Shown here piece by piece: positions 5,320 through 38,860 of a stretch of DNA of 64,000 nt. The stretch is taken from positions 99,106 through 163,105 of the forward strand of contig JALMLS010000211.1 in the NCBI GenBank assembly GCA_038496445.1, given 5' to 3'. Source of the DNA: Trichosphaerium sp. ATCC 40318 (lineage: Eukaryota; Protista; Tubulinea). Numbering within the stretch: position 1 is the first letter of the stretch; each line of letters opens with the position of its first letter. Both the position numbers and the translations under genes were made by a program. The notes under the pieces are model-generated. The model was not told where the DNA came from, did no database searches, and worked only from the letters and a program-made list of their open reading frames with translations.

Positions 5320-5467
5320 CTTGGAAGCATGGCAGGTCATGGTGAGCTGAAAACATTTTTCAAGGGTCATGCAAAGAAAGAGTGATGTCAACGGAAAGTT
5401 AGTTGGTGAGCACAAAGAGTGGTATAATAGTGGAGTGGTAAAGAAAAGGTGATTTTATGCAGATAAG
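5320..5467 (+). pseudogene. Decayed MORN2-repeat fragment
   Basis: Translates as HGELKTFFKGHAKKE* then DVNGKLVGEHKEWYNSGVVKKR*FY: the repeat consensus with stops and frameshifts. Confidence 0.55.
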
Positions 5468-14116: not shown

Positions 14117-14995
14117 ATGGCATACTATCGCAGCAATGCGGTACCTATTTCAATTCCAATAAGGGTTACAGCAGCAACTGAACCACGTGAAGAACCTTCA
14201 ACACCACAAGAAGAAACAGAAGCTACAACGCTTACAGAAGATATACACGCGGTAATTAACGTTTTACAAGTGCTTACAATCAGTATTAATCAAAACATGT
14301 AGATCTGTCACCTATTACGCCTTCCCGTTGAGATATACCTTGATATCATTGATATAGACCTTGAAACATACATTAAACTCCCTATTTTATGTAAAAACAC
14401 GACACCAACAAGATTCGATACTGAACTTAACAAACATGGAAAATGGCTTAGAATCAAAAATTTTACTCATGTGAAGGGAGAACAACATTATGTCAATGGT
14501 ATACTTGAAGGAGAATGTAAGAAGTGGTATGATAACGGACAAATTGAAGAAACGTGTTGTTATGTAAATGATAAACAACATGGTCAGTATAAACAGTGGT
14601 ATGAGACTGGCCAATTGAAGGAACATTATCACTATGTCAATGGTACATTTGAAGGCGAGTTTAAGACTTGGTATGAGAATGGTCAATGTCAAGAACACTG
14701 CTACTATATTTATGATAAACTTGAAGGAGAATACAAGAAGTACCATGATAATGGAACGCTATGGGAACAATGCTATTATGAGAATGGTACAAGAGAAGGA
14801 CTTCAATGTATTTGGTATAAAAATGGCCAATTGAAAATGCTTTGTAACCTTGTTAATGGTATACGAGAAGGAGAGCAAAGTACTTGGTATAAAAATGGTA
14901 ATCGTCATGAACAGTTTAATTGTGTAAATGGTAAGCGTAATGGTGAAGTTAAGTATTGGAAAAGGGATGGAACCTTACTAATTATGGAAGGGTAA
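14117..14995 (+). CDS. F-box + MORN2 (YwqK-like) repeat protein, copy A (7 repeats)
   Basis: Exon 1 MAYYRSN...DIHA, intron 14252-14302, then ICHLLRLPVEIYLDIIDIDLETYIKLPILCK (F-box-like) and seven 24-aa YxNGxxxGExKxWYxNGQL units. Confidence 0.85.
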
Positions 14996-15387
14996 TGAAA
15001 GCAAAAGTTGAGCAATGCCAACGCAGTTTCATTGAAACCTCTGTATTTAAAATATTAAAGTTACTATATTTTGTATTAATTAGATTCCTACAAATGTCCA
15101 GGTTACTCGATTCTGTTGGTACTGCCCAAAGAACAATTTAATGGTGGCTCGGATTGGCTTTTTTAGCAACAACTCGGCTTTCAAACAAGAGTAAAGTTGT
15201 ACTTACACCAATTGGGTTTGTAATTAGTCCTTTTCCAAGTTTTTCAAAGTCTTTAAAAAGGCGAAGATATTAATCATAACGACCAGAATATTTGCGTTAC
15301 CTCAAAAACAGTTTTTGTTTCACGGAGGGCATGTCCAAATTCTAAATAGGTCAATCCATGTCTTAGTTTGGAAATGTCGAAGTATAC

Positions 15388-15565
15388 CAATTGCTGATAC
15401 ACTGTAATTACCCACATATACGAAGTGGAGAATATAAGAAGTGGCCAATAGAGGGTACAAAGTAATTACACCAATGGTATATGCAACGGAGAATACAAGG
15501 ATTAGCATTCAAATGGTCAATTGAGAGCATAGTGATTACACAGTGGTAAACGAGAACAAGTATGG
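15388..15565 (+). pseudogene. Decayed MORN2-repeat fragment
   Basis: QLLIHCNYPHIRSGEYKKW...QSNYTNGICNGEYKD*HSNGQLRA*, with stops and frameshifts. Confidence 0.65.
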
Positions 15566-16316
15566 AATTGCTGAAAACGGCGTTAAACCCTTGAATGATA
15601 TGTACAAATGTCTGTTTGGTGTACAACCCTCAAAACTAACAACATCTTTCGAGTGTAGAATGACTGCAACATGGATAGCTCTCACCTATATGCCTCTAAG
15701 TCATGGCTGTACACGTGTTTTATCGTTACAGACGTTTGGGTAAAACTTGGTATGACTCACATAAATCAACTACAAACGCCTACAACGTGTATACAGAACA
15801 TGGCGAGCAGCAATCACCCACATCCCACCCAAAAAATTTCCTTTTCAGCTTTGTTTTTAAAAAACCTGTAAAACTTTCTTTTATTTTCCAAGTGTTTCTT
15901 GTACAATAGATAACAAATGCTTGGCGCTGCGCTAGAGCCACAAGATATTTTGTCTTCCTCCCAACATCGTCTAAGTTGAGTCCCCTTTGGTTAGTTGATA
16001 GAAGAGAATAGTAGTATTAGTGTTATACTCTAACGCACCAATACAACCAAGATTACTTGTAGCAACAGCTGCTTTTTATAACAAGGCAGTCAGTTAGTGT
16101 TCTGTTTTGTTTCTTCTTTAGACTTGTTAAACAATAAACGATCATAATCCCAAAAACCTTACTCGCGCTTGTTTTTGGTAGAAAATGAATTGCTTGAACA
16201 ACCCGTTCAAGTTAAGAAAAAAAACTCAAGGAGAGATCATGAAGGGTGATGAATCCAAAACGAAACATAATTGTAATGTGAAGGGTTTATTACAATAAAC
16301 ATTGTTAGTTGTACGT

Positions 16317-16658
16317 TTACACGCAATCAATATATGAAGTGTCTTGAATCCTTATTTTAAGGCCAATACATCCACGATCGAGGCATGAACGGCATTTCTT
16401 TGATCCTGATACTTTGTTTACACCAGGATAGTTCTTGTCTGGGCAATCGAATATATGCTCTTTACAGAGCAAGTCTCCATTATCTCTCCCTACACTCTTC
16501 GTTAAAAGACACAAGTTCAACAAGCAATTGTTCAAAGAGCTTGGTTGTATTGTTGTATGTGACGTACTGTACTTTCTGGAGCATACAGGGCAGGCTGACT
16601 GAGCTTCGGCAATGTAAAGCAAGCAAAGGGCAACAGCGAAGAGTATTATGAGTTTCAT
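16317..16658 (-). CDS. Small secreted cysteine-rich protein, copy 1 (113 aa)
   Basis: Signal peptide MKLIILFAVALCLLYIAEA, 10 Cys in the mature part, intronless, AATAAA downstream. Confidence 0.85.
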   Translation of the reverse strand: MKLIILFAVALCLLYIAEAQSACPVCSRKYSTSHTTIQPSSLNNCLLNLCLLTKSVGRDNGDLLCKEHIFDCPDKNYPGVNKVSGSKKCRSCLDRGCIGLKIRIQDTSYIDCV

Positions 16659-17691
16659 GTTTTAGGGGAGTAGTTGTTTGTATTGTTGTTGTTAAGAACT
16701 ATGTGTGTCTATTTGAAGGTGCACAGCCCACATTTTTGTGAGTTACTTCAGCTACTTCACGACACTCCCCGCGCCACGGAACTATTCATATTCTAAATTC
16801 AAAGACCATAATCTCGTATTGTAGGTGTTTTGCCTCTCTTTGAACCTATCGGGAAAACATCGGAAAAACAAAACAGCCATTAACTGAAAACTGTGTGAGA
16901 GAATCTCCCGACCTCTATTTTTTTGATTGTATACTGTATGTTACTTAGTTGCTTTGATGGGTATACAGTAAAGGGTTATAATTTAATATCTATATATATA
17001 TGAAGGTCGCAGCATGTACACGCAGTTTCCTCACTTTATTTCACGTGTACACGTTTTTTCCCTGTGATATTGGCGACTACTTTAGGAATCCTTGTAGGTT
17101 TGTATGACTGATTGTTTGAACGTCTTGTTCTAATTTAGCTATTTTTTTTCACATCAATATTCACGCCATACCCACCAATAGCTTACTATTTTTGAGCGAA
17201 CGTCGGAGTCGTGTACCTAGCGAAGTGATGGCCTGATTGGAGGGAAGAGAGCTCTTTTCTCGATGTCCCACATTCGAACTTACTAGAACAATTACCGCTG
17301 TCCTGGACCGCTGTGTTACCTCGGAAATTCTCGTGTAGTTTTCACGAATAGCGTAGAGTAAAGGAGTGGCGTTTGCCCTTTGTCACATTCTTGTTTAATC
17401 TTACAGCTAGACAGCTAAGTTTCAACTTTGTCGCCTTATTGTTTCTGTTTCAGTTAAACAGTTTGGCTTTTTTTAAAGTTTATCCGATGAATCTCCGATT
17501 CTTAGGAGACCCTTCATAACGCTTTATGTAGCGTTGTGATAATTGCCACATAATTTTGGTTATTCTCCACTGGCGAGGAGGTGTCGTGTTTTTTTCACTG
17601 AAACATGTGTTTAGTTTTGAGGACTGTGCACCTTCAAATAGACACACATAGTTCTTAACAACAACAATACAAACAACTACTCCCCTAAAAC

Positions 17692-18021
17692 ATGAAACTC
17701 ATAATACTCTTCGCTGTTGCCCTTTGCTTGCTTTACATTGCCGAAGCTCAGTCAGCCTGCCCTGTATGCTCCAGAAAGTACAGTACGTCACAACCAAGCT
17801 CTTTGAACAATTGCTTGTTGAACTTGTGTCTTTTAACGAAGAGTGTAGGGAGAGATAATGGAGACTTGCTCTGTAAAGAGCATATATTCGATTGCCCAGA
17901 CAAGAACTATCCTGGTGTAAACAAAGTATCAGGATCAAAGAAATGCCGTTCATGCCTCGATCGTGGATGTATTGGCCTTAAAATAAGGATTCAAGACACT
18001 TCATATATTGATTGCGTGTAA
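17692..18021 (+). CDS. Small secreted cysteine-rich protein, copy 2 (109 aa)
   Basis: Identical to copy 1 except that it lacks HTTI. Confidence 0.85.
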   Translation: MKLIILFAVALCLLYIAEAQSACPVCSRKYSTSQPSSLNNCLLNLCLLTKSVGRDNGDLLCKEHIFDCPDKNYPGVNKVSGSKKCRSCLDRGCIGLKIRIQDTSYIDCV

Positions 18022-18802
18022 ACGTACAACTAACAATGTTTATTGTAATAAACCCTTCACATTACAATTATGTTTCGTTTTGGCTTCATCACCCTTCATG
18101 ATCTCTCCTTGAGTTTTTTTTCTTAACTTGAACGGGTTGTTCAAGCAATTCATTTTCTACCAAACACTACAATGCATTGATATATGCCAGTTGCACAGAT
18201 TCGTGACTCAATAATACGCCCATAGGTATTGAAAAAAGTTTAACTTCATTGCCGTAGCGCAAGTTTCACTTCGGATCTATCGCAAATTAAATAGCGCAGA
18301 CATCATACTAATTCTCTCTTGTTCAGAAGCAATTAAAACAATGTAGTGAACCCGCACCTTAGTCGCGTTACTAACAACAGATGGTAGTTGAGAAAGAAAT
18401 AAATGTGAATAGTAGCGTTTATTAAGGAGAACTTCATTCAGCATTCATACCTGAGCTTGAACTCTGAAAAAATGAAAAACCAGAATAAAGTGAGAAGGAA
18501 CAAATATGCGTTATATTTTGGAATATGTGCTTTGTCTATTTACTTTACAATTGCAACCCATATAAAAAAAAAAACTAATGTGTAATACATCCACACACAA
18601 TAATTATAAATGTCATGATAATTGATTCAAGTATCTACACGAGTAGACATCAAAAAATATTTTCGCTTAGCGAAGACTGTTTACTGACTTTTTTTTTTTT
18701 TCTTGCGAGGAATAAATAAAAAATAAGCCAAATAAACTGATCCGCAAAGAAACGAAGAAAGAAAATTTGTATGTGATAGAATACGTTCTGTTTTCTTTTT
18801 TT

Positions 18803-21250
18803 TTAGGCCACATTGTCTTCCAAGACAGTGAATCGCTTATCTTTATCCATGACAGCCTTTAATGGAGTGTATGCGAAACCAGGGAGTGGTTGACATTCCA
18901 AAGATCCAGCGTAACGAGTAGAACCCCATCCTTGAACACCGATGTTTCCTTTTTGTCCCATCTCTACGATATCGCCGTTTTCTTCCATCAGAGCGACCTA
19001 AGGAGATAGTATAAATATCATAGACATCGTATTTAGAACTGTAAAGCAAGAGGAAAGGGAAAGAAGTAAAGAAAGTTGAAAAGACTTACTCTGTTGAAAG
19101 GTAGACTTGATTTTGGTCCAAATTTACCGCCATGAGCCAAGTAGTTCTCATGAGTTTCTGCAAATATAACAGATACGTTTTGACTACCCATAGTAATAAC
19201 AACACGATCCAAATCAAGTTTTTCAATTACACTACAAAAAGTAAGAAAAAAAAAAAAAGAAAAAATATGGTACGTACTCTTTTACGAGTTGAGTGTCTGG
19301 GATGTCTCCAGGGTAACCAACAATAACAGCAGCGCGGAGAGATGATGTATCTGTAGTCTCTAGCATTTCACATTCCAACAATTGTCTAAAATTAGATGCC
19401 ATATCACAGAGCACTGTACCTCTAAAAAAAGAGATCAGCGAAAAAAACCTCCTAAACAAAAAGCTCTTTGCTTTTGATTGATGGCCGTACTTGTCCATAT
19501 GGATAGTTCTCAATGTATGCTCAGGTGAGAAAACTTCCCAAGGAATAACAAAACGTGAACGGAAAGCCATAGTGATACCCCATCCTGAGATAAAAAATTA
19601 AATCCAAACGCTCAAAAGAAAATACCAAAAAAAAAATAAGGCGTACCGCAAACTAAACCAGCCGTTTGGTACGGTTGTAGATTAGATATAACACTATCAG
19701 CCTCAGTAATACCAATCTTGTTACCAATAAAAATAGCACTATTCATAATAGCGTATTCATTCCAGTGTACAGGCTGTTGAAAAAATAAGTTATGTCAACA
19801 AGCGCTTTGCTATAATTGTACTTCTTGAACTTTCTCCATTGGGTGAGGGCACACAAACATATAAGGCACTCGAGGATCTGCTTCTCTGTCCATTTTTTTC
19901 CAAGGAGCGATAGTAGGAAGAGCATGATGGACAAACAAACTTCTTAAATTAATCATTCCTAAAAAAAAGAAATCAAAAAAAAAAATGTACATATTCTTTC
20001 TTAACAAAATTAAAAGATAATTACTCACCATCAATAGCACGTTTTCCTGTGTGTATTACATATTTTAACTCTTTAAGAACATCATGTGTATTTGTCTGAA
20101 AGTAAGGCGCTATAGATTTCAGAGTAAGGGATCTAATACGTTGTACATTTTTTGAAAAAAAATCAACAAAAAAACAAGAAGAAAACGTACTGCTGTTCAA
20201 TAAAGGGAATGTTTCGTAAATGTTTTCCAGCTGGACGCTGTTACCGACCTTTGGTGCAAACATAAACAAACCAGGTCTGAACTTCTCCAAGGCATCACTA
20301 CGAACACAATAAGTTCCAAGCAACGCTTTAACGGTAAAGTACAAAAAAATCAAGAAAACAAACATTTGTCACAATAAAAACTGACAAACGCACATTAGAG
20401 GTTGTCCATAAATTTGTGGTGGCACCATAGCTACAGGGTGTCTTTGTGATCTACAACCACCAACAATAGCAGCCCACTAGAGCAAAGTTTAGAGACTTTT
20501 TGTTTAATACTTCCAATGTAATTAAATAGGTTACGTACAGCTTCGAGCTTGTTTGGCATGGCCATTGCGAAAGAAGTACCTTCAGCTCCACATGCTTCGC
20601 GCAAACCAGCAGCAATTGAATTAAAATCACCCTAATATGAGATGTTATTGAGCGAGTATTGTGCTTTTGGGTTGATTTAAAGCGATTCGGCGCAATAATA
20701 GGTGACAATAATTCAAACAGCGCGCAATTCATCCGCATTAGCGTTAATTTACCTTAAATTCTTTCCATGTACGTAATACATCCTCATTTACTTGACGCAC
20801 GACACTTTTATGCTCGTACTCGCTAATTTGGTCGTCGACGGCCTGGCTGAACGTCTGCATTGTAGGACCATACTCCCACTCATCAACAACGTGAGTTGAA
20901 AGCCTTGATGATCTGAAGTCTTGAAAGAACGCTTGTTGTTCCTTGTAATCTACCGAGATGTTTAATTAACGACTTTCGTGAAGAAATAACTCACGCTCTA
21001 AAAGTTTAGGGCTATCTTGATACTTCTGTATCTTTTCAGCGTATACTTCAGCAGTGTCAACTGGTGTTGGTTCTGTCCACCGTGTTGGGTAACTGTTAAT
21101 TTTTCCTCTCGTCTTGTTGTCTATGTTTCTGATTACGTTGTCTCTGGCACTTTGCTTTTTTGTTTGTACATAAGCATAAGAGCGCACCGCTTTGCGCGAT
21201 TTAGAGCGGTGGCCTCTGCTACATACTCGCTGTGCAGTTCGTCCAAGCAT
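18803..21250 (-). CDS. Mitochondria-targeted, degenerate AMP-binding (acyl-CoA synthetase-like) protein, multi-exon
   Basis: Arg/Ser-rich presequence, then RTWKEFK...IAAGL...AMPNKLE...IMNSAIFIGNKIGITEADSV...FSPEHTLRTI...TDTSSLRAAVI...GDIVEMGQKGNIGVQG. The element order follows ANL-superfamily synthetases, but the canonical motifs are eroded. Confidence 0.6.
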
Positions 21251-21368
21251 TGTGTTAGGTAGCGTAGCGTAGATGGTCTAGAGTTCTTTCGTTTTCTACA
21301 GGCAAAATTTTGGCACAAAACGCTGTTTTATTGTCTTTATTACCAGCTAACCCTACACTTGGCTTACT

Positions 21369-22070
21369 ATGCTATTGGTAATTGTAGGTAAGGGAGACAA
21401 GACACTGTACGAGTATGAAGCTGAAAGCTCTCAGGTAGCCATTTTTTACACTAATAATACCGCTTGGTTACTGACACATCTGTAGCGACCACGAGAAGAC
21501 AATTATTTAGGGCAGTTTATTTTACACTCAGCTTTAGACACTGTAGAGGAACGGATGTGGCAAAATGCGAGCTGGTAGCTACTATTTAACAACGTAGCCA
21601 GTTATTAACGTATTTAGGTTCTTAAAGCGTGTTGACACTAAAGCGTATAACAATTGCGACGTATGGTGCTTTGTTTCCGCTGGGCGTACGTTGTTTAAAC
21701 GACAATTCTACAGCAAATAAAATTCTAATGGTACTTCAAATACTCACCAAACAACGTAGATACCAAATTCTTGCTTCTAATGCCAGTTAAAAACAAAAGC
21801 GAGGATACAATTAAAACATTTTTTTGGGAAGTTTATGAGCTCTACTTGAAGGCACGTGTCACTATCACAACATTTTATGCAATGTCAAAAAAATTTAATA
21901 ATAATACGATCACTAGGTACTCATGAACCCATTCTACGAACCAAATAGCACTATAACATCCTCTACGTTTCACCAACGCGTAAAAGGTACCAACACTTGA
22001 ATCATTAGGCTCTTTACCTTCATTGCAACTGAGTGTTTTTGTAGGTATCATAAATAGAAAATTGTATTAA
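21369..22070 (+). CDS. TRAPPC2: TRAPP complex subunit 2 (sedlin/Trs20), 6 exons
   Basis: MLLVIVGKGDKTLYE...QFILHSALDTVEERMW...FLKRVD...FVSAGHTKFLLL...FFWEVYELYLK/VLMNPFY. Confidence 0.93.
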
Positions 22071-22407
22071 AAACCACGCAATTCGAACGTGAGAGAATCT
22101 ATTAGAGAAAGATTTGTAATTACTATGTCTCTATGAAAGCATTTTTGAAAAAACCCTGTGTTTCACCGATTTAAACGCCACAGCAATACGCTGTAGTGTG
22201 TTTATACAACATCGGCTAAATAGTTACCGGCCTTACCTGAAACGGAAAGGATTTAACCGTACAGTTTATGTATGGTTTGCACATGCGTGGTTGACCTGTT
22301 ACCATTGGTTGTCGTGAGAGTTTAACATCTTGAGAAGCAAATAAGGCTTAGTACAAGTTAGGGGTAACTTAGCTTTTTCCGGATTTTTGTTTTAGTTTTT
22401 TCGTAAC

Positions 22408-23635
22408 ATGAGTACGGTATCAAATAACAAGGCTGCTTCTGGCCATTCTCATGCTCACCATCAATACAAAAAACTATCTAAGGAAGAAGCACGGTATCTA
22501 CTTCACGTAGATGCTGTATCTATCCCTACAGTAGCAGTCACAGTTATTGCTACATCTGTATTTCTACTATGCATCAAATTAGGTCCATTGCACGATAATT
22601 GGGTGCGTACATGTTTGTATTCGCGTGAACTGATGAATTATAGCTTAATTGGCCCACTTGCGTATTAATTCAAGCGTTTTGTGCTTATGCAAACTTTACA
22701 GCAATGCACGATTCAGCACACAAGTCTCTTGGTAAAAACCGGTTAGCCAACGGGTTTTTTGGAAGGTACTAAAAAACGGCGTCACATTTTTACTTTGCCT
22801 CGAGATTTACTAAAATCAGAGTTGTAGGTTTGCCTGCTTAACTATGGGACCACATATTGTTTATGTTGCATTTCGTTATGTTCATTTAAAACATCATAGA
22901 TACACTAATGATCCACAACGTGATCCAGTAAGTGTTTCTTTTTTTCTTTTTTTTGAAATCAACAATCACGTGTTATGATTAAGCTAGCTTTAGGATTATT
23001 GGGTTCACACTGGCGCTTTACTACCTTTAAGGTTTGCTACACTTGACTTATTTTACTACTATGATGTATTCAAAAACTGGAGAGATCATGCTATGAAAGA
23101 TATTCTAGAAGCTCTTGTTTGGCTCGTAACAGGAATTGCAGTGTCAATATACCTCGCCAACTCTTGTTATTCTACCTATTTCTGGTAACAGCAATAAGTC
23201 ATCGGGTTGTGTGTTTACTGACACGTGATATAGGCTTCACTGGATGTTACCAGCACGCTTGGCAATTATGTTTTTGGCTTTTTCTTTTGATTGGTTACCT
23301 CATCGCGAAAATCAGGTACGTTTAATATTTATTGGCGTTCTGGTTGTCTTGTTACTTACACCGCTAGGTGACATTTTCAGAGGATAGGTATAATACTACG
23401 TCCTTGCTAGTGTTTCCAATACAGGCATTATTCACTTGTTTGTTATTCTTTCAAGTACGCACTTTTTTTTCAATTACGGTCTAACTTCCATTTTTAGGAC
23501 TATCATATAATGCACCATATGTACCCTAGGATACCTTTCTATAGATATACAACTGCGTGGGCAATGAAAAGAGACGAATGGTTACATCGTAAAGTACCAG
23601 TGAGCTACCCATTAGGTGGAGGTAAAATACCATAA
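22408..23635 (+). CDS. Membrane fatty-acid desaturase/CrtR-like hydroxylase family protein
   Basis: Three His boxes (HDSAH, HLKHH followed by TNDPQRDPD, YHIMHHMYPRIPFY) plus FDWLPH. Confidence 0.88.
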
Positions 23636-23832
23636 AGCCCATAAAATACACTGTTTCCTCAAAAAAAGATCCAAGAAAACAATAAAAGCTATTTATCAAC
23701 ATCACGTGCTTTTTACTTCAAGAAAAAAAACAATAGGCCACCTATTAAATTACTTTATCTTTCTCTTTTACAAGCGTGCGTACACGTGAAATATTTGTTG
23801 ACGACATCGCATAAGCGACAGTTTTTTTTTTT

Positions 23833-25498: not shown

Positions 25499-26333
25499 GT
25501 TGCTCACCACATCAATTTCAACTGAATTACAAAAAAAGTGCAGTTTTCGCAAATAAGTGTCACTAGCGCTACCCAAAAAACTCCTTGTACGTCTTTGCTA
25601 AGTTGAAAGAGTAGACACAAGATCAATTAATAATGGGTACTTCAGATCTTAATCTCCTTACTTTACAGCACCGGCAGCAAGTACGCAAACGCGACTATAC
25701 AACTTTCTAAACGCGCACGTGATATTTGAAGCCAAAACAAAAAATTACATAGCAATTTGTTTTACTGGTTACTAAACAACGCTGTAAATCACAAAGTAGT
25801 TTAAAAATGGCTCGGTTAGTTTTAACCGCCAGTGTATTTGTTCAAAAATAGCATCAGATACAATTAAAGCGCCCCGCAAGTGTTATACCGCGCTTGAGGC
25901 TCTATCTATTTATGAAAAATTATCACGTGAAAAAAAAAGTGAAGGCTTCTGTATTTAATACCTAATAAAACAGCTATCAGATGAGCTTTTCCATGATGTA
26001 GTCTAGTCACAATATGTAATCAAACGCCACACCACGTGTAAAAAATCCTTTGATACTCCACTAGCAAATAGTTTTGCAATGTTATGTTGATAAGTGCGTA
26101 GTCATTTCACGTCAGTACTGTTTGGTTAGACATTGTCTTGCTTTCGAAGTCAATCAATTCTGGAATACTTGTCTTTTATGGCAAATATTTTCTGTATATA
26201 ATTCAAGCTTGGTTAGAGTCTCTAGCTAAAGGTTCATTTGGTGGACTAAAGGAAAGCAGAAAATTCAACAAAAGACTTTGGTATGAAAAGTCTCTGAAAC
26301 CTCTTCTCCTTGCGTTGACACAACTAATACATC

Positions 26334-26564: not shown

Positions 26565-26792
26565 AGAATAATAGCACAAATGTAGCGTATAATCTCAATG
26601 AGAAAAATAAACATCACGTGACCGCACGCCTTGAAACAGTATTTGCTTATTTCATTTAAAGTCTTTACACTAAAGTCATGTGCAAATTAGCCAAGTCTCT
26701 GCCAGTCATGTGCCGATCGGCAACTTTTCAAATAATATCAAGTTAAAATAAAACCGTTGTACTCTACTCTGTAGAAAACAGTCTGTTAGATA

Positions 26793-29700
26793 ATGGGTAA
26801 TGCCAATAACGCTGAAAACAAGATTTATTTTGTAGCAACAGCTCATTTAGACACACAATGGTTATGGACCATTCAAGTACGCTTTTGACATTAGATAGAG
26901 TGTTTTAAACGCGCATAGGATACCATAGCGTGTTTTCTACCTGATACAGTTGAAAAGAATGTCGCGTTAATGGACAGAGACAACAGTGATTATGTTTTTA
27001 GCTTTGAAGGCAAACGACATGAATCTTGTACATCATATTAACGTTTTTGTGCGTAAAAACAGGCGCATTCCGTTACATGCTTATCAAAGAGTATTATCCT
27101 GAACTGTACGAGAAAATGAAGCAAAAAATTAAAACAGGCGAATGGCGCGTTTCGGGCGGTATGGTTTTTTAAAAGGCGTGGTGTAATGTATTATATAGGA
27201 TCTATTGTAGCCAGTGACGTTAATGTGCCTTCGCCAGAAGCACTTGCAAGACAGTTTTTATACGGAAACGGATTCTTCGAAACAGAGTTCGGAAAAACAA
27301 GGTAAGATGACATAGTTTCGAAATAACCATAGTGCTTACCTCTCCTATAGTAAAGATGTATTCTTACCTGATTGTTTTGGATTCCCGTAAGTTCTCATTT
27401 TGCATTGTGAAGCCTTCTTGTAGTTGTGTTATTTATCACGTGACACAGTACTAAAACTTTTTACTGTTTAGACATAGCCTACCAACTGTTGCAGCGCATT
27501 GTGGTAGACTTGGATTTAGTAGTCAAAAACTTACTTGGAACAATCGAATGAGTAACTTTATACCATTTGATATTGGAACATGGGAAGGACCAGATGGATC
27601 GCGATTAATTGCATGTTTACAGGTTTGATAATACACTTTATTTTTCGATGATGTTTGTACATTAACTTCGTTGCAGCCTGGCCAGTATTGTAACTTGCAA
27701 GCAATACCAGAAGCAGATTTCGATGGACCTATTCAGAACTTCAGACAAATATTTCCGTATAGAATACGTGGACCGTTTTCGCAGACACTTCAACAAAAAG
27801 TGAAAAACCTTGTAAGAACTTCTTTTTTTCGAAACAGAACCCTCTCTATTACTGCCGTTTTGGTAAAATATATGCTTACAGACCTTCTATTAGGGTGTTT
27901 CTATGGTTTATTTTGGTACTGGAGACGCAGGAGGAGCCCCAAAACGGAGATCAATAGAAAACGTAGAAAAGAGTCTCACTGTTACAAAGCCGTTTAGTGC
28001 TGTCTTATCAGGTTCAGACGAGATGTTCATTGACGTTTCTAAAAAGCCCGATATACTGGCAAAAATGAAGAATCATAAGGGAGAACTGCTTATGTCCACA
28101 CACGGTACAGGTATATTGATAACCACAGCCAAAGAGAAACAAGAAAATTGTTCTCTGATTTTTATGTTAGGTTGCTATACTTCCAAGACTTTGTTGAAGA
28201 AATGGAACCGTCAAATCGAACTGCTTGCATCCGCAACTGAGGTTATTGCTGTGGCATCAATGCTTAAAACAAATCAATATCCACAAGCGCTCATCACTGA
28301 AGCTTGGATCAGATTATTGGTTCACCAGTTCCATGATGATTTAACTGGCAAAATACTTTTTAGTTAAATCTTGTTTTAACGGTTTTATTTTGTAGGTACA
28401 TCCATGATTCCAGCATACAGATTCACTCTTAATGATATGGCATTATCATTCAATCTTTTGCATGCAAGTATTAAACATTCATTTGGACAACTTACAACAC
28501 ATGTTACCACGAATGAAGAGAAGAATTTTTTCGTGACAGTATTTAATCCCACTTCATTTAGTCGCTCTGATTATGGTAAGAGTGTTCGCGCCTATCCCGT
28601 AAATGATAATGCTAAAAACTCTCCAAAGCGTCTGTTAAAATCGATATCAAAGGTGATTATACAGTCAAAGGACCAAACGGTATCATAGAAAGCGTAGCTA
28701 GCTCAGAAAATGGTACATTGTAAATTATCAACTTTAATCATTAATCCAAAAAAAGGTGCTTGTATTGTCACCTTTCTGGCAACTATACCTTCCATGTCTA
28801 TCATGCATTATACCATCACTCCTTCAAGTAGTGTTAATGATGCCAAATGTAAGGAAATATTATTGAATTCATTGCAACTAAAGAAAATGTAGCGCTGATA
28901 GAACAAAGCAACGAAATTGAAAACAAAAGATACAAAGTGGTAGTTAATGATAATGGTAACATTATCAGTGTTTTCGATAAAGCTCTTGATAAAGAACTCT
29001 TGAGAAGTCCTATAGTATTCCAGTGTCTATACAATAGCGATTTAGACGATGAGCACCGTAGGAACTACCCAATGTGGCCTGAATGGGAAATACTACCTGA
29101 AGGTACAAACGAACCAAAACTCAAAGATCTTCTTCATAACTTCGACGGTAGATGTCGAGACGGATCCATATCTCATTATAGATCAATGTGAAAATATCAC
29201 GTGCGTGGCCACATGTCAAATTAAGCTAATTTATTTTTAAACTGAAGTAAGCATGAGAGTAATTTATCAGTGTCTTTGGTTGTTGAAAGGAAACTTTCTA
29301 TTAAAGATAAGATTACTACAATGAAGCATACCATTTCTTTGTTTAAAATGGGTGATTCTGTATCTTATGTGCATGTTGATAACGTTATTGATTGGCAGTG
29401 CCCTGATACACTCTTGAAAGTCGCTTTTCCATGCACTGCATCAAATAATCTTGCAACTTATGATCTGGGTACAGTTAATTGTTGTTTGATTGTTCAAACA
29501 CTGGGTTTTTCTTATTGTTGTTAAGGTTGTGGTACAATTCAGAGGGGAAATAATGATTTCTCAATAGAAGAAATACCACATTATGAAGTACCTGCTCAGT
29601 TGTGGGTGGACTTAACAGATAAAAAAGCAAACTTTGGTGCGTTCTTTTCCCAACTTGCACATACTGTCTGTTTTCTTTGTTCGTTCTAACTTTTTATGCC

Positions 29701-31257
29701 AAACTTTAGGGTCTTTTATTTCTTCAGACTCTAAATACGGTTTTGATAAGCCTAATGACAATACGCTTCGCATGACTCTTATACATTCTCCAAATGCAAA
29801 AATCCGAAGAAATGGATTTAAGCAGAACTCAGTGTTCCAAGATGTCGGGCATAATGCTTTCAAATTTATCATTGGTGGTCACAAAGGAGACTGGAAAGAG
29901 GTAGTATATACATTGTGTAATTGTATTGATTTTTATTCCACGCTCAGGGCAACGTACCAAGGATTTGTCAGTGCTTCAATCAACCTTTAATAACACATGT
30001 CTCAAAAGATTGTGTTCTTAATGAAACGATTAATATTGCTTCTCTGTCTACTGATCGTGTTGTTATACGTGCATTAAAGAAAGCAGAACGCTCTGATAAA
30101 ATTGTAATACGGCTACAGGTATCTAAAAACTAGTTCTTTAGCTGGAGTTTGATTGAACTTTATTTAGGAGTTATATGGTGAAACACATTCAAATGTCAAG
30201 GTATTTGTATTAGATGGTGTTGTTGAGGCAGTTGAGATGGATGGAGAAGAGCATGAGATTAAAGATATTACAGTGAGCGATGAAACCTTAGAAATACAGT
30301 CCATACGACCTTATCAAATGCTTACATTTGGGTTAACAATAAAATCACCTGACAGTGAACAAGAACAAGATTCTGCCACAGACTTAGTAATTGATCTCAA
30401 AAAGAACATTAATGTCGTAGCTCCAGAAGGTACGTACTATACCAAAAAGAGCCAAAGATGCCTTGTATTGATGCTATTTCACTTAGGTTCCTTTAATGAT
30501 GAGTTATGGGCTTTTCCTAAACATAAGTTCCCAGAAGAAATCAAATACTTGTCTTTTACTTTTCCTATTACTGAAAGTGATGGTTGTCAAGGCTTAAGTT
30601 TGGACGAAAAACTTGCTATTACAGTACCTAAAGGGTACAAGTATTTGCTCTTCCTTGCAGGTAGGGTTTAAAATTGTAAGAGTTAGTACTAACAGCAAGT
30701 CAGGTAGTAAAGATGTTGATACAACGATTTCTGTTGATGTTAATGGAAATTGTCATGACGTTAATGTATTGGCCATTAAAGGTGATCTAAGCTATGCAAC
30801 ATACATAGAAGATATTGAGCCGCATCCGTACGTGTCAGTACTTTTATTTTAGATGATATGAAAAGACTTCAAAACTCGTTCAAACATGAGGCGTCCAATG
30901 GACGAAACAACTTTTTTTTTCAAAATAAAGCTGATGATCTTTTTATCAACAGGAGAGTAAGTGAGGGGTATAAAAGGGCAAACATTGCGTGGCACTCAGA
31001 ATGTCTTATCCATAGAGGAGGAAAAGTACCTTTGGTTACACGTGTACGTATCACAAGAAAAAAATAAGAAAAACAAACCACCTAATATGAGATTTTATTA
31101 GAAAAAGAATTACTTATCTGATGGTGTTATGCCTTATGAGTTTGGATACATGTTCTGTCATAAAATATGTCTCAAATACAATCAAGAAAATATTGTTACT
31201 CTTCCTAAATCACAAGTTATTATGTTCAGTGCTATAGCAACAAATAAAGAACTGTAA
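26793..31257 (+). CDS. GH38 alpha-mannosidase, many exons
   Basis: ATAHLDTQWLW, FSFEGAFRY, DVNVPSPEALARQFLYGN, DVFLPDCFGFP, FSSQKLTW, GTGDAGG, HGTGCYTS, HQFHDDLTGTS, YEVPAQLWVDL, SKYGFDKP, ALKKAERSDKIVIRLQE. Confidence 0.95.
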
Positions 31258-32440
31258 TATTTCTTTCATTTTTTTTGATCTGAGCAAATCAAGCGCAGAC
31301 ATTAATAATAATTAATGACTTTTTATGGCTACTAGAATACCTGGAACAACGAACACCTAGCTATGATCAAGACGGTAAATCAGCCCCTGAACTACAGGTG
31401 ATGTTACCTAGAGACAACAACTAGCAGTAGTTACAACTTCACACAAGTTTCAGTGACGTCGCAGAGTAGAGAATGTTTTCGTGTAAATTACAATTTTGGC
31501 TAGGTCCTAGATTAATAATAACTTGGTTGGCTCAAAGATAAACGTGAGATTCCAAAAAAACAATTTGAGAACAAAACAATCAACAAGCAACATCACATGA
31601 ACAAGGCTGTTGTTATTTCTTGTTTTCTTCTCATATTTCTTGTAGTTCGTCATTTATACAACTTAATAGCCTCTATACCATTTCTTCTGTTCTCTGTTTT
31701 AATCATCTATTTCATCATAGTGCTCTTTCGTTTGGCCATTTTCATTCCATTCCTTGTATTCTCCTTCTTTTTTGCCAGTTATTATATTATACTGCTCCTT
31801 CAAGTGGCCATTTTCATACCATTTCTTGTATTCTTCTTCTAGGATACCATTTATAAAAGTATATTGCCCCTCTAATTGGCCATTTTTATACCATTCCTTG
31901 TATTCTCCGTCACATTTACCATTATTATAATTACAGTGTACCATCATGTGGCCATTGTCATACCATTCCTTGTATTCTCCGTCACATTCACCATTACTGT
32001 AATTATAATGTTTCTCCAATTGGCCATCATAATTCCATTCCTTGTATTCTCCATTATTTTTACCATTGGTGACATTACACTGCTTCTCCAATTGGCCATT
32101 GTCATGCCATTCCTTGTATTCTCCGTTACATTCACCATTGGTGTAATTACAATGTAACTCCAATTGGCTATTGTCAAACCATCGCTTGTATTCTCCGTTG
32201 ACTTTACCATTTATATAATTACACCGAATCTCTAATTGGCCATTGTCATACCATCGCTTGTATTCTCCGTTGACTTTACCATTTATATAATTACACTGCA
32301 CCTCTAATTGGCCATTGTCATGCCAATCCTTGTATTCTCCGTTGTATTTATCATTAGAGTAATTACAATGTACCCACAATATGCCATTTTTGTTCCATTG
32401 CTTGTATTCTCCTTCTTGTTTACCGTCAATGTAACTATAT

Positions 32441-35153
32441 CGTGATTGGTAATTTGCCAACTTTTTTTGTCAATTTGTCAATTCTGTCAACTATCTCTTA
32501 CTATGTAGTGCAGGTAAGATGTGTGCTTGTAATAGGTAGTGATACCTCCAATAATATTCTGGTGTCATGGCATGGAAGTACAAATCACGTGGTTTTTTTT
32601 TTCACTGTAGGTTTGATCTACACAAGCTGTGTTACTTGTATGTCATTTCTATGCGTAGAAAAGCGCTGTAGCAGTATCTATACTACCATTGAGTATTTTT
32701 AGGCTGAGTTTTTTACACAAAGGGTAAACTTGCTCTAACAGCGTTTGTTAGATGCATTTCCGTGTTTTCTGAAAGTTTGCATGAGACTTAATAAGATTGA
32801 ACACACAATTAAACACTAGCAATGCTAACAGCACTAGAAAGATGCCCCACACGGCCAGCAACACCAACAATGGGCAATATTGATTGCTGACATGGATGGA
32901 GTGCAATACTCCTATTTTTTATTGTTCTCCTCAAAAAGATGGGCTCGGCAGTACAGTCCCATCAGACATGCTGAAAAAGGCAATTTGACCACATGGTATT
33001 ACCGTTGTAAAACCGCGATAAGTGCAAAGCTAAATTACAAATACTCTCAAAACATGGAAGAGGCACGTCAATACTAAACATAAAGGAAACTGAAGGTATT
33101 TTTATTTGTTTTAAACAAAATGGTAAATATATTTGTTTAGGACATGTAAAAGAGTGCTGTCCTGTGCACATATCGAAGCTGAAGCTCAATAATAGCGTTA
33201 AAAGGAGTATAGAACAAGATATTGAAAGAGGGATACCTCCGCTTAGTGTGGTACGTCAAATTATTCTAGACACTACCCTTATCATTTTCTGTACAGTATA
33301 AATCATTTTTGGAGAATGATGCTCATGATCCGCTGAATTCGTCAGAAATACCTAGCACGGACAACATGGCATACCTTGCGCGTAAGGTACACCGTAGGCA
33401 CGAAATGCACCACGAGGTATTATTTTTGGTTAATTAGAAATGTTTTTACACTAACACAAACTAGGTGTACTCAAACATTCGGTTAATGCATCCTTTGTCC
33501 TCACGAATTGTTCAGGCAACGAATGATGTCATATCATTTGTTCACCCTGAGTTAAACACTTATTTACGTGATTTTGATAACAGTGTACTCTTTGTTGATG
33601 GCACCTACAGAATAGCAGATATTAATGCGCAGGTGAGAGCTACACAGGCACAACTCTTCTTTATTTTTTTTTGTAGGCTTTGTTTTTTTGGGTGAAAGCA
33701 AAAGGAGCTAAGCGTACTAAAGGAACCTGCATTAGCTTTGCAATCATGCATGCCAAGAACCTTCCTGAGTATGAGTATGCATTCATGCATCTAAAAAGTG
33801 TATGTGGAGTGCCTTTTCAGCGGTTGATGACTGATGGAGAAACAAATATGAAACGAGGTAAACTTTTTTGTATTTTTTGTTTAGAAGACTCATATTTTAT
33901 TCAGCATGTAAATGTACTGGGCCCTTTAAAAATATCCCAATGTATCTACCATATTGCTGAAGCGCACAGAAGAAAGCGGTCAGAGCTGGGTATGAAGAAA
34001 GAAGGGCGTGAAGAGGAGAATAGATGGTGTAAGTTGGTGTCAACAACTTTACTATATGAAAAAAATGAGAAAAAGTTTTATCGTTATTGGAATTCCTTTC
34101 AGAAGGAAGCACTTGAAAAAACAAATGACTGTAGAGCATACATTAAGTACCTAGCCAACACATACATGAATGTTACTGATGAAGTCACCAAGTACGTTAT
34201 TCAATACTTGTTTATTAATTATTGCTTTTTTTTACCTTACATTTTTTATACTAGATGTCCTCCATCTACATGGGCGCTATGGACAGTTACTGATACCCCT
34301 TGGGAGCATACGCGTACCAATAACATCAGTGAAGGTAACAACAGTGCTGTTAAAAAGGTGCTCTCATATGAGGGTACAAGGAAACGTCCTTGTGATGTTG
34401 TTTTTTCTTCACTGGTAAAGTTTGCTACTTGCAGCTTAAAAGATGGTCAACGCACAGTTATTGGAATAGCTGTGGGCACACCTAAGAGTGTCACTTTAAA
34501 GAGGCGAAAAGATCAAGCTGAGAAAATTGAGAAGAGGTGTAAGTGACCAATACTGTTATGGTATATGAAATTAACGTTGTCAAAGTGAAGAAACTAAATA
34601 CCCTGCTTTTGAAAATTAAAGCACAAAGACAAGCAAAAAGAGCTGCTAAAAAAAAAAAGATGGAGAAAAAGCAATGCCTCCAACATAATCAACGTCTTAA
34701 AGCTCCATTAAAGGTAAGTAAGAAGTTTTTTAATAACATGTGACTGTGCAGCTACGAAGGAAAAAACCATAACAATTAAAAAAGTGTACTCAAAAAGTAT
34801 CTCGCCAACCAACTTAAAAAATTTTATTGACTTTTAATTTGTTCTATTACGTACATACACTTTATTTTGATTTATAACGGCATATAATTCCACTGAGGGG
34901 TGATTTTCAGTATCTGAAACAATTGAAAATGGTATTGTCGCTGAAAAAAGTTTTGTCAACAAAATATTACACGTGTTCACACCTTTACCCAAAGCCAAAA
35001 TCAGAATTCAAATACTATTCCATTGTCTTACATGTATCCAATGTAACTGTAGTCAAGTCAATCAACAATATAGCATGGTCAGAGTCATTGATAGCGGATT
35101 GACAAATAGTTGACAAAAAAAAGTTGACAAAAGTTGGCATTTTCCTAGTCACC
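32441..35153 (+). mobile_element. Mutator-like (MULE) DNA transposon, 2713 bp
   Basis: 8-bp TSD AACTATAT (32433-32440 and 35154-35161). Imperfect TIRs (CGTGATTGGTAATTTGCCAACTTT vs reverse complement GGTGACTAGGAAAATGCCAACTTT) carry repeated TGTCAA. Contains a transposase. Confidence 0.92.
32838..34772 (+). CDS. MULE DDE transposase with introns, probably frameshifted
   Basis: LFVDGTY (D1), LMTDGE (D2), QCIYH (CxxH), TRTNNISEGNN (E). The N-terminal WYYRCK...CKAKL...H zinc finger needs one extra A at about 33010. Start approximate. Confidence 0.85.
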
Positions 35154-36308
35154 AACTATATTGTCTCATCAATTGACCACTATCATACCATTCCTTGTAT
35201 TCCCCGTTGTGTCTTCCATTGATGTAATTATATTGCTTCTTCAATTGTCCATTGCCATACCATTCCTTGCATTCTCCGTTGCGTATACCATTGATGTAAT
35301 TAGATTGCATCCACAATTGACCATTGTCAACCCATTGCTTGTTTTCTCCTTCTCGTTTACCGTCAATGTAAGTAAACTGTTTCATCAATTGGCCACTATC
35401 ATACCATTTCCTGTATTTTCCATCTCGTATACCATGGTTCCACTGTTCTTGCTCTTTTGGCTTGTTATCTCTTCGTCGGTACTGCCTGTTGTATATTGGT
35501 TTCTGCCATTTCCCATGCTTGTTCATCTCATCATCGAACCTTGTGGTCATTGCTGCTTGTTTTGAAAGCAGTGGCCAAATTAAATACACAAATGAGTCCA
35601 AATCGATAATATCAAGTTGAATCTCGACTGGAAGGTGTAGTAGATAGCAATCATCTGATTGCGTATTAAATCTCTATTTATTTATTGTTAGGTACTCTTG
35701 CGCTTTAAAAGATTCTGGTACCTTGTACGCGATAGTATTGGGACTATTGAGCATTCTAAATAAAATAAACAAACCTTCGCGGTTACACGTGTAAGGTTAG
35801 TAAATAAGTCAACTTACGTCATTCCCGTAATTTTCAATACAGATCCTTGAGTAAATAAATAATGTGAAGCCGCACATTCTTATACTATCATTTTGATTGG
35901 CGAGCTTTTTTTTTCCCTTCCTTTTAAAAAAGCACGTGCGCGTAATCTAGTGTGTATTTATCACAATATTTAATTTACATCCCCTACCGCAGCTATTGAG
36001 TTTACAATAATTGATACTAACAACATGAAGAGTTGAAGGCGTTGCATGCGAACTGAAGTTTCAAAGTATAATATGAATACTTAGTTTGGTGTGACAATGG
36101 ACTAATCATGTAAGGAGGTGGTCTTGACTGCTTTAGCGCAGTTGCAAAGCTGCAAATCCTTACAATGTTGGAGTGTATATTCCATTTTGATGGTAAGGAA
36201 TTAATCACAAGAAGTACTTTTTATGTATTCCGTCATTGTTTAGTAGGCTTCGGCAAGAATTAGGTGGGTACAAGGTGACAAAATTAGTCCACTTTATTAA
36301 TGTAGAAA

Positions 36309-37507
36309 TTATGTTGCTGGTAATATGTACTTTAGGTTACACAATCTGTAGTAGGTCCGCCTCAAGTCCATTTGTTTTAATCTGAAGATAAGAGGGAAGA
36401 AATTTTTCTCTTGGTAGTAGTGGAGTTGTTGTGGGCGCACCCTGTTAGAATAAAGTAATTAGTAATGAGAATTAAACAAGAAACATTTTAGAAAGTACTA
36501 ATAACTCACCATCAAGTACATTGCACCATTGACAAACGAGTAACTCACGCCCAAAGCCCTTTTCGCTAGAACGTCATCATCACTTTTAACAAAGTTTAGT
36601 ACTTTTTGTAGCTCGTTGTCAGTAGGTTCTCGAAGCAAGGGCTCTATCATTGTGTCATACTTGGGATCATAAACTAAATCTTTAGGTTTTGTATGAGGAT
36701 ACATGACAGTGTAGAAAGTATCACTGATATCAAAGTGCAATTTACTTCCATCTTTCATGTCAAATACATCATGGAAAGTCGGTCTTCCTTCAGGTGTTTT
36801 ATCTTCTACAAGAGACTGTTTCGTCCAACTGCGTTCTCCAAATAATAAGTGCAATAATTGCTGTTCCCCACCAGCTAAAAGCAATCAATAAACAATGCTG
36901 AATAAGAAAATCTTGAGAACAGCCGTGCGCCTTTTTTTCTATCACGTGTTTTGATAAACAAAAACGAATGTAGGTACCTGAAGTTGAAATAAATGGCTTC
37001 TCCTTGGAACCATTGCCGGAGAGCCTGAGGGCTATAGCACTGTTATTAGAGAAGTTTCTGAAGAACCCGAAATGGTCGCTTGATTTAGGTTCAATTGCTT
37101 GAGCGTTGAGAACATGCTTCCTTGCGCACAAAAGCGAACTTGGTTGACCTGTGGCGATACTGTAGGCTATTTGATTATGTCTACAGTCCAAATACAACTT
37201 CCGAGCTGTTTCGAACACGTTTTCTTCTAATTTGGCGTCGCCATTTTGAAAGTAAGTATGGTGGTAACTACACAGCTTATAAAATGAGTTGAGTAATATT
37301 TCGGCCTTATCAGGGTCTTTTGGAGAAGGCAACAGTAAATCGTCTGGTAGTAGTGTCGATTTACGCCTGGATCAAGAGGGGTTTTTGTAAGCTTGTTTAC
37401 CCGGAACAGCGCTCATACCGTTTTGCATCACGTAAAACAGCTATTTTACCTCGGTTTTGGATATAGTTGGTTGTGCGGCATTGCTGCGCTGTTGCTAAAC
37501 GTAACAT
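36309..37507 (-). CDS. DUF4919-like protein with a putative mitochondrial presequence, multi-exon
   Basis: MLRLATAQQCRTT... presequence. SGNGSKEKPF...KQSLV...HDVF...LHFDIS resembles the DUF4919 C-terminal pattern (recognised by eye). 3' end uncertain. Confidence 0.5.
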
Positions 37508-38001
37508 GATTTGCTGTAAACTTACAAATAAAGGTCAACTTAGTTGTTAACCAATGAGGAAGTTGCGCGGACTAAAAATGGGGATCAGCTGAGTATGACC
37601 AACTGCAGTCACTGTAGGAATATTCTCTATGTCATAATATCCACACGTGGTGTAGTATAGTTAATGCACTTACAGTTGAAAACGTCTGTAATACGTATAA
37701 GTACATAGAGGCTAATAACTTATCAGGCTGTTGGAAAATCAAACTTTTTTTCTAACAAAACTGCAAAAAGTCGATCACATTTACTATACGTAAAGTCACG
37801 ATTTTAACAGCAACTTGAAGCAATGTTTCACGTGTCAGTTGGTTCATTTGTTTATAACCAGCATTCACGTGTTTTTTTTTGTTTCGTAGAACAAATCGTT
37901 TTTTGTGCTGCACAATGAAAGTGCACTAGTTTTTTGTGTCAAATCATTCATTATCAGAAATGACAAACTTCGAGAAGCACACCTCCTTTTTTTCAGATAC
38001 G

Positions 38002-38860
38002 ATGTACAAGAAAATACTAACACAAGTTGATTTGCTAGTACCCACGAGGTCACGTGTTCAAATATTAATGAAAGCTAATTCTTATTAGTGCACCACTACT
38101 GCGTTTACCTGCGGAACTCATTTTAGATATCACCGACCTGTACCCGAAGTTCAAAGAAGTCCAACATCTTCTATGTAAAAAAACTGCTTTAGAATCTGGC
38201 AAATACAATCTACGTTTTGAGAAGTGTGGTACATTCGAAGAGTGGCATGAGAATGGCAAGAGAAAGAGTAAATTTACGTATGAGAATGGGAAGCTCCATG
38301 GAGAGGGTATGATGTGGTCCAGTGATGGATGCTTGCGCGTTAACAGCACGTTCATATACGGAGTGGCACAATTTATCAGGTATAAAAACGGCCGTGTACT
38401 GGGAAAATGGGATTCTAAAACTAGTACTTACAACTCCAATGATGACCAAGATTCTTGGAACAGTTCAGTTGGTTGGTTGGCTAGTAAGCTATGGTTTACG
38501 AAAAATATCAACAAAAAAGTTATTTATATCGTTGATAAGCGTAGATATACAGAATTCCTTGGTAACATACCACATGGTAGGGACGAACAATATATTCGCG
38601 GATGTAAAACCAGTAGTGGATCATACAAGAACGGATTGATGCACGGATCATTCAAGTATTGGCATTCAAACCATAAATTGGGACTGATAGAAGGGACTTC
38701 TGATGGTCAACTGGTAGGTTTAACTCCGTATTTACATGGCAAACGTCATGGTACAGAAATACAGTATAGATCGCGTATCAAATCTACGTTAGTATACGAA
38801 GATGGCGTTCTTATAAAACAGGAGAGAAGACCATATTCTTGGGCACTAAAGTTCGACTAA
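38002..38860 (+). CDS. F-box + divergent MORN2 repeat protein, copy C
   Basis: MYKKILTQVDLLVPTS, intron 38049-38088, APLLRLPAELILDITDLYPKFKEVQHLLCKK, then GTFEEWHENGKRK...YENGKLHGEGMMWSSDG...YKNGLMHGSFKYWHSN...YLHGKRHG. Confidence 0.8.

Follow-up and report, generated by a model that had tools for sequence, protein, structure and literature searches.

A lineage-restricted gene family of Trichosphaerium sp. that joins a predicted F-box-like domain to arrays of MORN_2 repeats

What kind of protein is encoded by genes in which an F-box-like motif stands before an array of MORN_2 repeats? The question is raised by a 64,000-nucleotide (nt) stretch of contig JALMLS010000211.1 from the marine amoeba Trichosphaerium sp. 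ATCC 40318 (hereafter the window, whose first nucleotide is position 1), which carries gene 1 (14117-14995, + strand), gene 2 (35754-31699, - strand), the divergent gene 3, and two decayed copies. These loci represent a lineage-restricted gene family that is expanding and decaying, and the modeled structures suggest that its products are probably adaptors of Skp1-cullin-F-box (SCF) ubiquitin ligases. Structure prediction shows each product as a three-helix domain of the F-box fold that is joined, via an RFDxxLxKHGKW strand, to a flat array of 24-amino acid (aa) beta-hairpins of the YwqK-type MORN_2 class. The F-box would dock on Skp1, and each protein would thus serve an SCF ubiquitin ligase as its substrate receptor, while the MORN_2 sheet would hold the target, which would then be ubiquitinated.

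Is the N-terminal domain, then, an F-box? The conserved domain, approximately 45 to 50 aa in length, bears an LPxE(I/L)xxxI signature and lies ahead of the repeat domain. In the family alignments its Pro is nearly invariant, L-x-L-P-x-E-(L/I) and (C/S)K are conserved, and the spacing LPxE(I/L)xxxI..L..(C/S)K is that of F-boxes. A six-frame scan of the window found the pattern LxLPxE[IL]xxx[IL] in four family copies and at only two unrelated sites, so the sharing of the motif does not arise by chance. AlphaFold placed helices at residues 9-18, 20-29, and 31-37, with a predicted local distance difference test (pLDDT) score of 79 when the domain was modeled alone and of 81-92 in the full-length model. 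When this model was compared exhaustively with 48,161 PDB chains by VIA-align, 35 matches reached Z ≥ 2; the match fell on an F-box, at the residues of the F-box itself, in 15 of the 35 and in 11 of the top 14. These chains, mostly from Skp1 complexes, include cyclin F, Legionella AnkB (AnkB-Skp1), FBXL10, FBXL17, FBXL5, FBXL2, FBXO31, FBXO3, FBXO42, Cdc4, Skp2, FBH1, beta-TrCP1, and COI1, and the superposition of Skp2 gave 2.4 Å over 40 of 41 residues. For the predicted model, such an enrichment of F-boxes is far beyond chance. Language-model searches pointed in the same direction: the ESM Atlas neighbors of the N-terminal residues were giant-virus clusters in which Pfam finds MORN_2 and F-box, although this search gives no alignment, and when MORN clusters were excluded, an F-box or F-box-like domain was present in 68 of 100 named neighbors, all with low scores. 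From these predictions we class the N-terminal domain as F-box-like but divergent.

Several results weigh against this conclusion. The original prediction had described an F-box-like motif; its fold is supported by structure prediction, fold search, and language-model neighbors, but detection by profile hidden Markov models, the first check proposed there, failed: the Pfam F-box models (PF00646, PF12937, and relatives) matched none of the three window copies at E ≤ 10 and only one of 55 family members, by PF00646 at an E-value of 0.12. Likewise, HMMER family profiles of the domain matched no F-box chain among the PDB sequences, and Pfam detected no F-box in the proteins returned by the searches for relatives, which leaves no profile-profile bridge to bona fide F-boxes. 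A word-indexed search for relatives limited to residues 1-56 returned no candidates. When Foldseek compared the 56-aa model with PDB entries, with Swiss-Prot models, and with those of the ESM Atlas, nothing significant emerged, the lone hint being the Arabidopsis F-box protein At5g50270 at an E-value of 9. The individual VIA-align Z scores were just 2 to 3, as expected for 56 aa, so that the case depends on the enrichment, and the AlphaFold model itself may have been shaped from the LPxE motif. In addition, another residue takes the place of the canonical helix 3 Trp (CK-x-TA).

The distribution of the domain is narrow. A profile of the N-terminal domain searched against 1.84 billion protein representatives recovered only 55 clusters (50% identity), essentially all of which share the order of a variable leader, the domain, the RFDxxLxKHGKW strand, and MORN_2 units. 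Ten cluster members were traced, and they proved to be either MMETSP transcripts, with complete open reading frames (ORFs) and a variable leader, or contigs of about 1 kb from the Joint Genome Institute (JGI), two of which came from one sample; nearly all are transcripts from a single culture of a marine protist. The traced members have a G+C content (GC) of 37-38% and share 75-77% DNA identity with gene 2. This F-box subtype therefore appears to be tied to MORN_2 and to one lineage. Searches of the IMG/VR viral contigs with single proteins and with the family profile did not recover the domain, nor did one scan of the JGI metagenomes. Two of its weakest relatives, each followed by MORN_2 units, lie on tightly packed, apparently intronless Logan contigs of 23% GC (L001, 2552-3295; L002, 62-499), and these may represent the two-domain protein as it occurs in giant viruses or in AT-rich protists.

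The nature of the repeat part is much clearer. The identification of MORN_2 units, 7 in gene 1 and 14 in gene 2, as claimed in the original prediction, was confirmed with Pfam PF07661 above its cutoff of 29.6 bits: exon 2 of gene 1 gave an E-value of 2.9e-25 (85.8-88.5 bits), and the two halves of the gene 2 array gave 50.6 and 107.7 bits. The only NCBIfam match was a sub-threshold one to the LIC20035 adhesin, which is due to the MORN repeats. The AlphaFold model of gene 1 exon 2, built with 51 family sequences, had a pLDDT of 92.4 and a predicted TM-score of 0.83 and showed 15 strands after the helices; its array part, with pLDDT 94-99, adopts the beta-hairpin array fold and matches solved MORN1 crystal structures (Foldseek E-value 1.5e-8). 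Bacterial YwqK-type models matched residues 43-226 only, at an E-value of 1e-17 and a TM-score of 0.75, and giant-virus MORN proteins matched as well as the bacterial ones (E-value 1.6e-17). Since the structural similarity to viral and to bacterial proteins is equal, no donor can be named for the MORN array. Bacterial MORN_2 arrays are annotated as toxin-binding immunity proteins.

What the putative adaptors would bind is the weakest step of the proposed mechanism. Nonself proteins, such as toxins of bacterial prey or proteins of giant viruses, are a reasonable guess, but endogenous targets are equally possible, and a function in defense is suggested by analogy to FBXO3/SUKH and to nematode F-box proteins. 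The alternative that survives best is that the family consists of ordinary expanded SCF adaptors for endogenous substrates, in the cell cycle or a complex life cycle, with no part in conflict and with a turnover that is genomic drift, as in plant F-box genes; we regard it as possible, if somewhat doubtful. The selection analysis bears directly on this point. For the 14 units of gene 2, the ratio of nonsynonymous to synonymous substitution rates (dN/dS, Nei-Gojobori, all pairs pooled) was approximately 0.53; the ten unit positions that vary most gave 0.62 and the scaffold positions 0.38, although the estimate is crude because unit pairs are non-independent and some sites are near saturation. 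Between the paralogues of the window, which share only about 42% amino acid identity, synonymous sites would be saturated. The ratio is thus below 1 at all position classes, which suits endogenous substrates, and the within-array comparison of gene 2 gave no sign of positive or diversifying selection; the repertoire for defense that had been proposed for these genes finds no support. Moreover, gene turnover in the absence of an immune role is known from large F-box families (PMC7829749), and the authors of the Trichosphaerium genome paper tie MORN and F-box domains to the cell cycle (PMC10521059). Set against these points, neither being decisive, are the YwqK-type repeat, otherwise typical of bacteria and giant viruses, and the presence of a bacterial-type SUKH immunity gene in the same window.

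A second alternative, which seems unlikely but deserves attention, is that the N-terminal domain is no working F-box but a family-specific helical cap or localization module, and that the proteins are non-degradative MORN scaffolds or binders, for example stoichiometric toxin neutralizers like bacterial YwqK or, as with other MORN proteins, tethers to membrane or cytoskeleton. The failure of every sequence-profile test for an F-box is what this explanation would lead one to expect. There is also almost no linker between the helices and the first beta-strand, and the RFD..KHGKW junction is the best conserved stretch, as would be the case for a structural cap, and the bacterial proteins that match the MORN_2 part by itself carry the annotation of YwqK antitoxins. 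It is, however, difficult to reconcile with the fold search, in which Skp1-bound F-boxes stood far above anything else, with the F-box clusters among the language-model neighbors, or with the F-box-typical spacing of the motif.

A third alternative is that the genes are recent passengers of giant-virus or bacterial origin, namely viral effectors that hijack the host SCF, scattered in the host genome by integration and duplication, largely neutral or selfish, and now decaying. The intronless gene bodies, next to a neighbor gene with at least four introns within 1.2 kb, would be explained in this way, as would the several dead or broken copies in 34 kb and the scarce expression of gene 1. The MORN_2 array closest to that of gene 1, at 43% identity, comes from a viral-looking metagenomic contig of 116 kb and 38.6% GC with densely packed genes (L005, 6001-6741 and 9298-9947), which may be a giant virus; the weakest N-terminal relatives occur on the 23% GC, intronless-looking contigs mentioned above; the ESM Atlas neighbors are Nucleocytoviricota clusters; and MORN, F-box, and YwqK genes are classed as viral or bacterial transfers in the Trichosphaerium genome paper (PMC10521059). 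Nevertheless, the GC of the window is host-like (35-38%), the copies are interspersed with spliced host genes, every copy needs a spliced 5' exon for its start codon, many paralogues are transcribed as complete ORFs, and the dN/dS of about one-half indicates constraint. In addition, the N-terminal profile found nothing in IMG/VR or the JGI metagenomes, and therefore the exchange with giant viruses that had been suggested for the family comes down to generic MORN_2 similarity only, which is equal to that of bacterial proteins. We hold a passenger origin to be improbable. A contiguous endogenous giant-virus region was rejected in view of the uniform GC and of the spliced host gene that separates copies of the family.

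On the L005 contig, no F-box-like head or motif occurs near the nearest MORN arrays, and the contig also carries two further MORN_2 genes and encodes a kinase, a methyltransferase, RNase III, and a 2-oxoglutarate oxygenase. Several of the nearest MORN_2 arrays (P0002, P0066, P0069, and P0137) bear an N-terminal DUF5758 (Pfam E-value 1.8e-18 for P0002) in place of the F-box-like head; because DUF5758 heads several of them, MORN_2 arrays appear to be combined with different N-terminal modules.

The putative SCF adaptors of this family can be compared with several known systems. They resemble the F-box receptors of SCF ligases (Skp2, Cdc4, FBXL, and FBXO; PF00646/PF12937) in the N-terminal three-helix domain with LPxE(I/L)xxxI, in the repeat domain behind it, and in a predicted fold that superposes on Skp1-bound F-boxes, but they differ in escaping detection by Pfam and HMMER, in the replaced Trp of helix 3, in having almost no linker, and in a partner domain that is MORN_2 rather than leucine-rich repeats, WD40, or Kelch. 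With bacterial YwqK-type MORN_2 proteins (COG2849, annotated as the antitoxin or immunity partner of YwqJ) they share the 24-aa PF07661 repeat and the predicted hairpin sheet, whereas the present genes are eukaryotic, with a modeled spliced 5' exon and an F-box-like head, and have no adjacent toxin gene among the ORFs of at least 150 aa. The MORN and F-box/MORN families of giant viruses (Orpheovirus, Hyperionvirus, Pithovirus, and Marseillevirus) are multigene and fast-changing like the present family (PMC5753266), their MORN_2 arrays are equally similar in structure, and the ESM Atlas contains viral clusters with both MORN_2 and a Pfam F-box; the present family differs in its host context, host-like GC, and intron, and in an N-terminal domain that was not found in IMG/VR. 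FBXO3, in which a bacterial immunity domain (SUKH) serves as the presumed substrate module behind an F-box, offers a precedent (PMC3113570). The F-box + SUKH proteins of the FBXO3/SKIP16 type thus share with the present family the reuse of a bacterial immunity domain family, and a stand-alone SUKH gene lies in the window, but the recognition fold is different, and FBXO3 is old and single-copy whereas the present family is lineage-restricted and multicopy. The expanded F-box families of nematodes and plants likewise have many paralogues, pseudogenes, and variable substrate-binding parts; their repeat type is different, and the positive selection from which an immune role was proposed for the nematode families (PMC8120010) was not detected among the gene 2 units of the present family.

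A bolder scenario can be drawn from these likenesses. A grazing amoeba might have captured bacterial immunity modules (the YwqK-type MORN_2 arrays, possibly also the SUKH gene at a distance of 10 kb) and joined them to an F-box of its own, so that a variable repertoire would send injected bacterial toxins or giant-virus proteins to the proteasome. We think this a long shot, but if true, it would represent an innate-immune use of prokaryotic toxin-immunity domains by a eukaryote. Even apart from that scenario, a working F-box would mean that host adaptors of ubiquitin ligases hide behind the labels "bacterial YwqK antitoxin" and "MORN repeat protein" of dozens of amoeba genes, and the reported mass gene transfer into that genome would have to be read differently. 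MORN_2 would then join the repeat types that serve as F-box substrate modules, the family would define an F-box subtype missed by current profile libraries, and its members would be concrete candidates for the way in which free-living amoebae handle bacterial prey and giant viruses. At present the finding amounts to an improvement of annotation rather than a new system.

Positions of the gene-family features in the window
Feature	Position	Strand	Description
Gene 1 modeled exon 1	14117-14251	+	45 aa, acidic, Thr/Pro-rich; unrelated to other copies; open frame from ATG 14117 to donor
Gene 1 modeled intron	14252-14302	+	51 nt, GTAATT..TGTAG, phase 0; predicted
Gene 1 exon 2	14303-14995	+	F-box-like three-helix domain at ~14309-14410; RFD..KHGKW linker strand; 7 MORN_2 units at ~14438-14959; stop
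Gene 2 modeled exon 1	35722-35754	-	11 aa; ATG 35754, phase 0, donor GTACCA
Gene 2 modeled intron	35674-35721	-	48 nt, GTACCA..AATAG; predicted
Gene 2 exon 2, 5' part	35154-35673	-	F-box-like domain and first 4 MORN_2 units; terminal target-duplication copy 35161-35154; Pfam MORN_2 E-value 7.9e-14
Gene 2 exon 2, 3' part	31699-32440	-	Second target-duplication copy 32440-32433; last 10 MORN_2 units (array resumes at 32432); stop; Pfam MORN_2 E-value 2.2e-32
Transposon-like insert in gene 2	32441-35153		2,713 bp; imperfect 24-nt terminal inverted repeats; 8-bp ATATAGTT target duplication
Gene 3, divergent member	38002-38860	+	Exon 1 38002-38048 (uncertain); 40-nt intron 38049-38088; exon 2 38089-38860 with F-box-like motif and few degenerate MORN-like units
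Decayed fourth copy	5095-5467	+	F-box-like motif 5095-5240, then MORN_2 remnants 5351-5464; stops and frameshift
Decayed MORN_2 fragment	15388-15565	+	~2-3 units, interrupted by stops, 0.4 kb beyond the end of gene 1; tblastn E-value 5e-5 vs gene 2 (matching part 15388-15529)

Genes 1 and 2 follow the common plan that had been described for the family, that is, a short first exon, an intron, the motif, and an intronless MORN_2 array, as judged from their frames and from intron models of 48-51 nt of the form GTA..YAG. In gene 1, exon 2 is a single open frame (ICHLLRLPVEIYLDII...) that reads ICHLLRLPVEIYLDIIDIDLETYIKLPILCKNTTPTRFDTELNKHGKW and runs on into seven units of 24 aa with the form Y-x-N-G-x3-G-E-x-K-x-W-x2-N-G-Q-L. 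A stop codon immediately precedes this frame, which offers no ATG ahead of the motif, and a 5' exon is therefore required. The introns modeled for genes 1 and 2 resemble the four RNA-verified introns of the neighbor gene described below. RNA data, which came from four RNA-type runs and were read for gene 1, give little further support: no RNA covers exon 1 and the intron of gene 1 across 13840-14375, and gene 1 is barely represented, by one exact 195-nt RNA-derived contig at 14599-14793 in run X2; both points weigh against the adaptor reading. Paralogue transcripts account for the short, mismatched RNA pieces at 14487-14544, whose ends are loose.

Gene 2 has the same plan, but its 14 units are split by an insert. 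Its second exon opens at 35673 with LLHLPVEIQLDII, and the start region reads ...LLHLPVEIQLDIIDLD.... As the gene stands, translation stops two codons into the insert, and in-silico removal of the insert together with one copy of the target duplication yields a single frame of 1251 nt with exactly 14 units, so the disruption of one copy by a transposon, already noted in the original prediction, holds good. The array has a tandem period of 72 nt in 9.5 copies at 76-77% identity, with a higher-order period of 216 nt. Across 31699-35435, synonymous differences among the 14 units are near zero at unit codons 9-11 (E-Y-K), 16, and 23-24 and high elsewhere, which could be caused by codon preference or by homogenization through local conversion. 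The insert has subterminal TTGACAAA repeats, and motifs that resemble VDGTY and WYYRC occur in its ORFs, along with a weak match to RYYR-CCHC (E-value 0.021). These features suggest a Mutator-like element; because the ORFs gave no transposase match in Pfam, the label depends on those three resemblances only.

The inclusion of gene 3 in the plan holds only in part. Its exon 2 carries LLRLPAELILDIT at 38099, and tblastn detected homology to gene 2 across the N-terminal 120 aa (E-values 6.7e-9 and 2.1e-8), which identify it as a divergent member. Its exon 1 and intron are uncertain, however, because the sole phase-compatible donor is the atypical GTCACG, which gives the 40-nt intron, and its repeats remain sub-threshold in Pfam (MORN, E-value 2.5e-4; MORN_2, E-value 8.5e-4, 19.7-22.6 bits).

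Of the two decayed fragments that had been recognized, both contain MORN_2 remnants with stops, but the one placed at 5320-5467 is only part of a fuller decayed copy. The remnant at 5351-5464 belongs to a fourth, dead gene because a broken N-terminal motif, CLNLPLELHLCIIDFDNTTYYK..RYDAKLTK, lies upstream of it at 5095-5240; against gene 1, tblastn gave E-values of 0.022 for the motif and 0.004 for the MORN part, collinear and on the same strand. The five family loci thus lie within 34 kb, and three of the five are dead or broken. Both 72-nt units and genes of the family become duplicated, and copies are lost to point decay or hit by transposons; the two decayed copies, the transposon-split copy, and the unit duplication bear out the birth-and-death turnover that had been read from the window, within a family of many paralogues.

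The surroundings are those of a host genome, with 34-40% GC throughout the window. The neighbor gene at 12560-13775 (+ strand) is transcribed and spliced; its introns of 46, 49, 99, and 215 nt (12726-13561) have GTA donors and YAG acceptors and are matched exactly by RNA contigs in three runs that bear three different organism labels. Four runs contain exact spliced contigs of this gene, and for this reason they represent RNA from the source organism. No toxin gene was found beside the family copies, whose neighbors are this spliced eukaryotic gene, family fragments, and ORFs without a toxin domain (Pfam, ORFs of at least 150 aa). The genome of Trichosphaerium sp. reported by Tekle et al. in 2023 (PMC10521059) has 37.69% GC, and that report gives F-box and MORN as the commonest domains among putative giant-virus transfers. 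Its tables contain at least 51 models called "YwqK family antitoxin" along with "MORN repeat protein [Pacmanvirus]," "F-box domain protein [Indivirus]," and intronless "SMI1/KNR4 family protein" models (PMC10521059), and the mix of genes in the window (MORN_2, F-box-like, and SUKH) is the same as the paper lists. In the text and tables searched, the YwqK-like genes are treated as bacterial transfers, and an F-box-like head on them is not reported (PMC10521059). Compared with the "YwqK family antitoxin," "MORN repeat protein," and "F-box domain protein" models, the genes of the window are of the same kinds and have matching GC, and the F-box-like head is the point of difference (PMC10521059).

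Two further features of the window were observed. The SUKH gene at 3093-3785 (+ strand) is an intronless ORF of the bacterial SMI1/KNR4 (SUKH-1) type (Pfam E-value 4.7e-23) and is preceded by one MORN-like unit (NGKKKDWFENGKQ); no F-box-like motif lies upstream in the frame of this ORF. Models of this type are among the bacterial transfers of the Trichosphaerium paper (PMC10521059). At 15797-16010, contigs in all four runs match with many small indels and substitutions, and this segment resembles a dispersed repeat that is transcribed and has several diverged copies in the genome.

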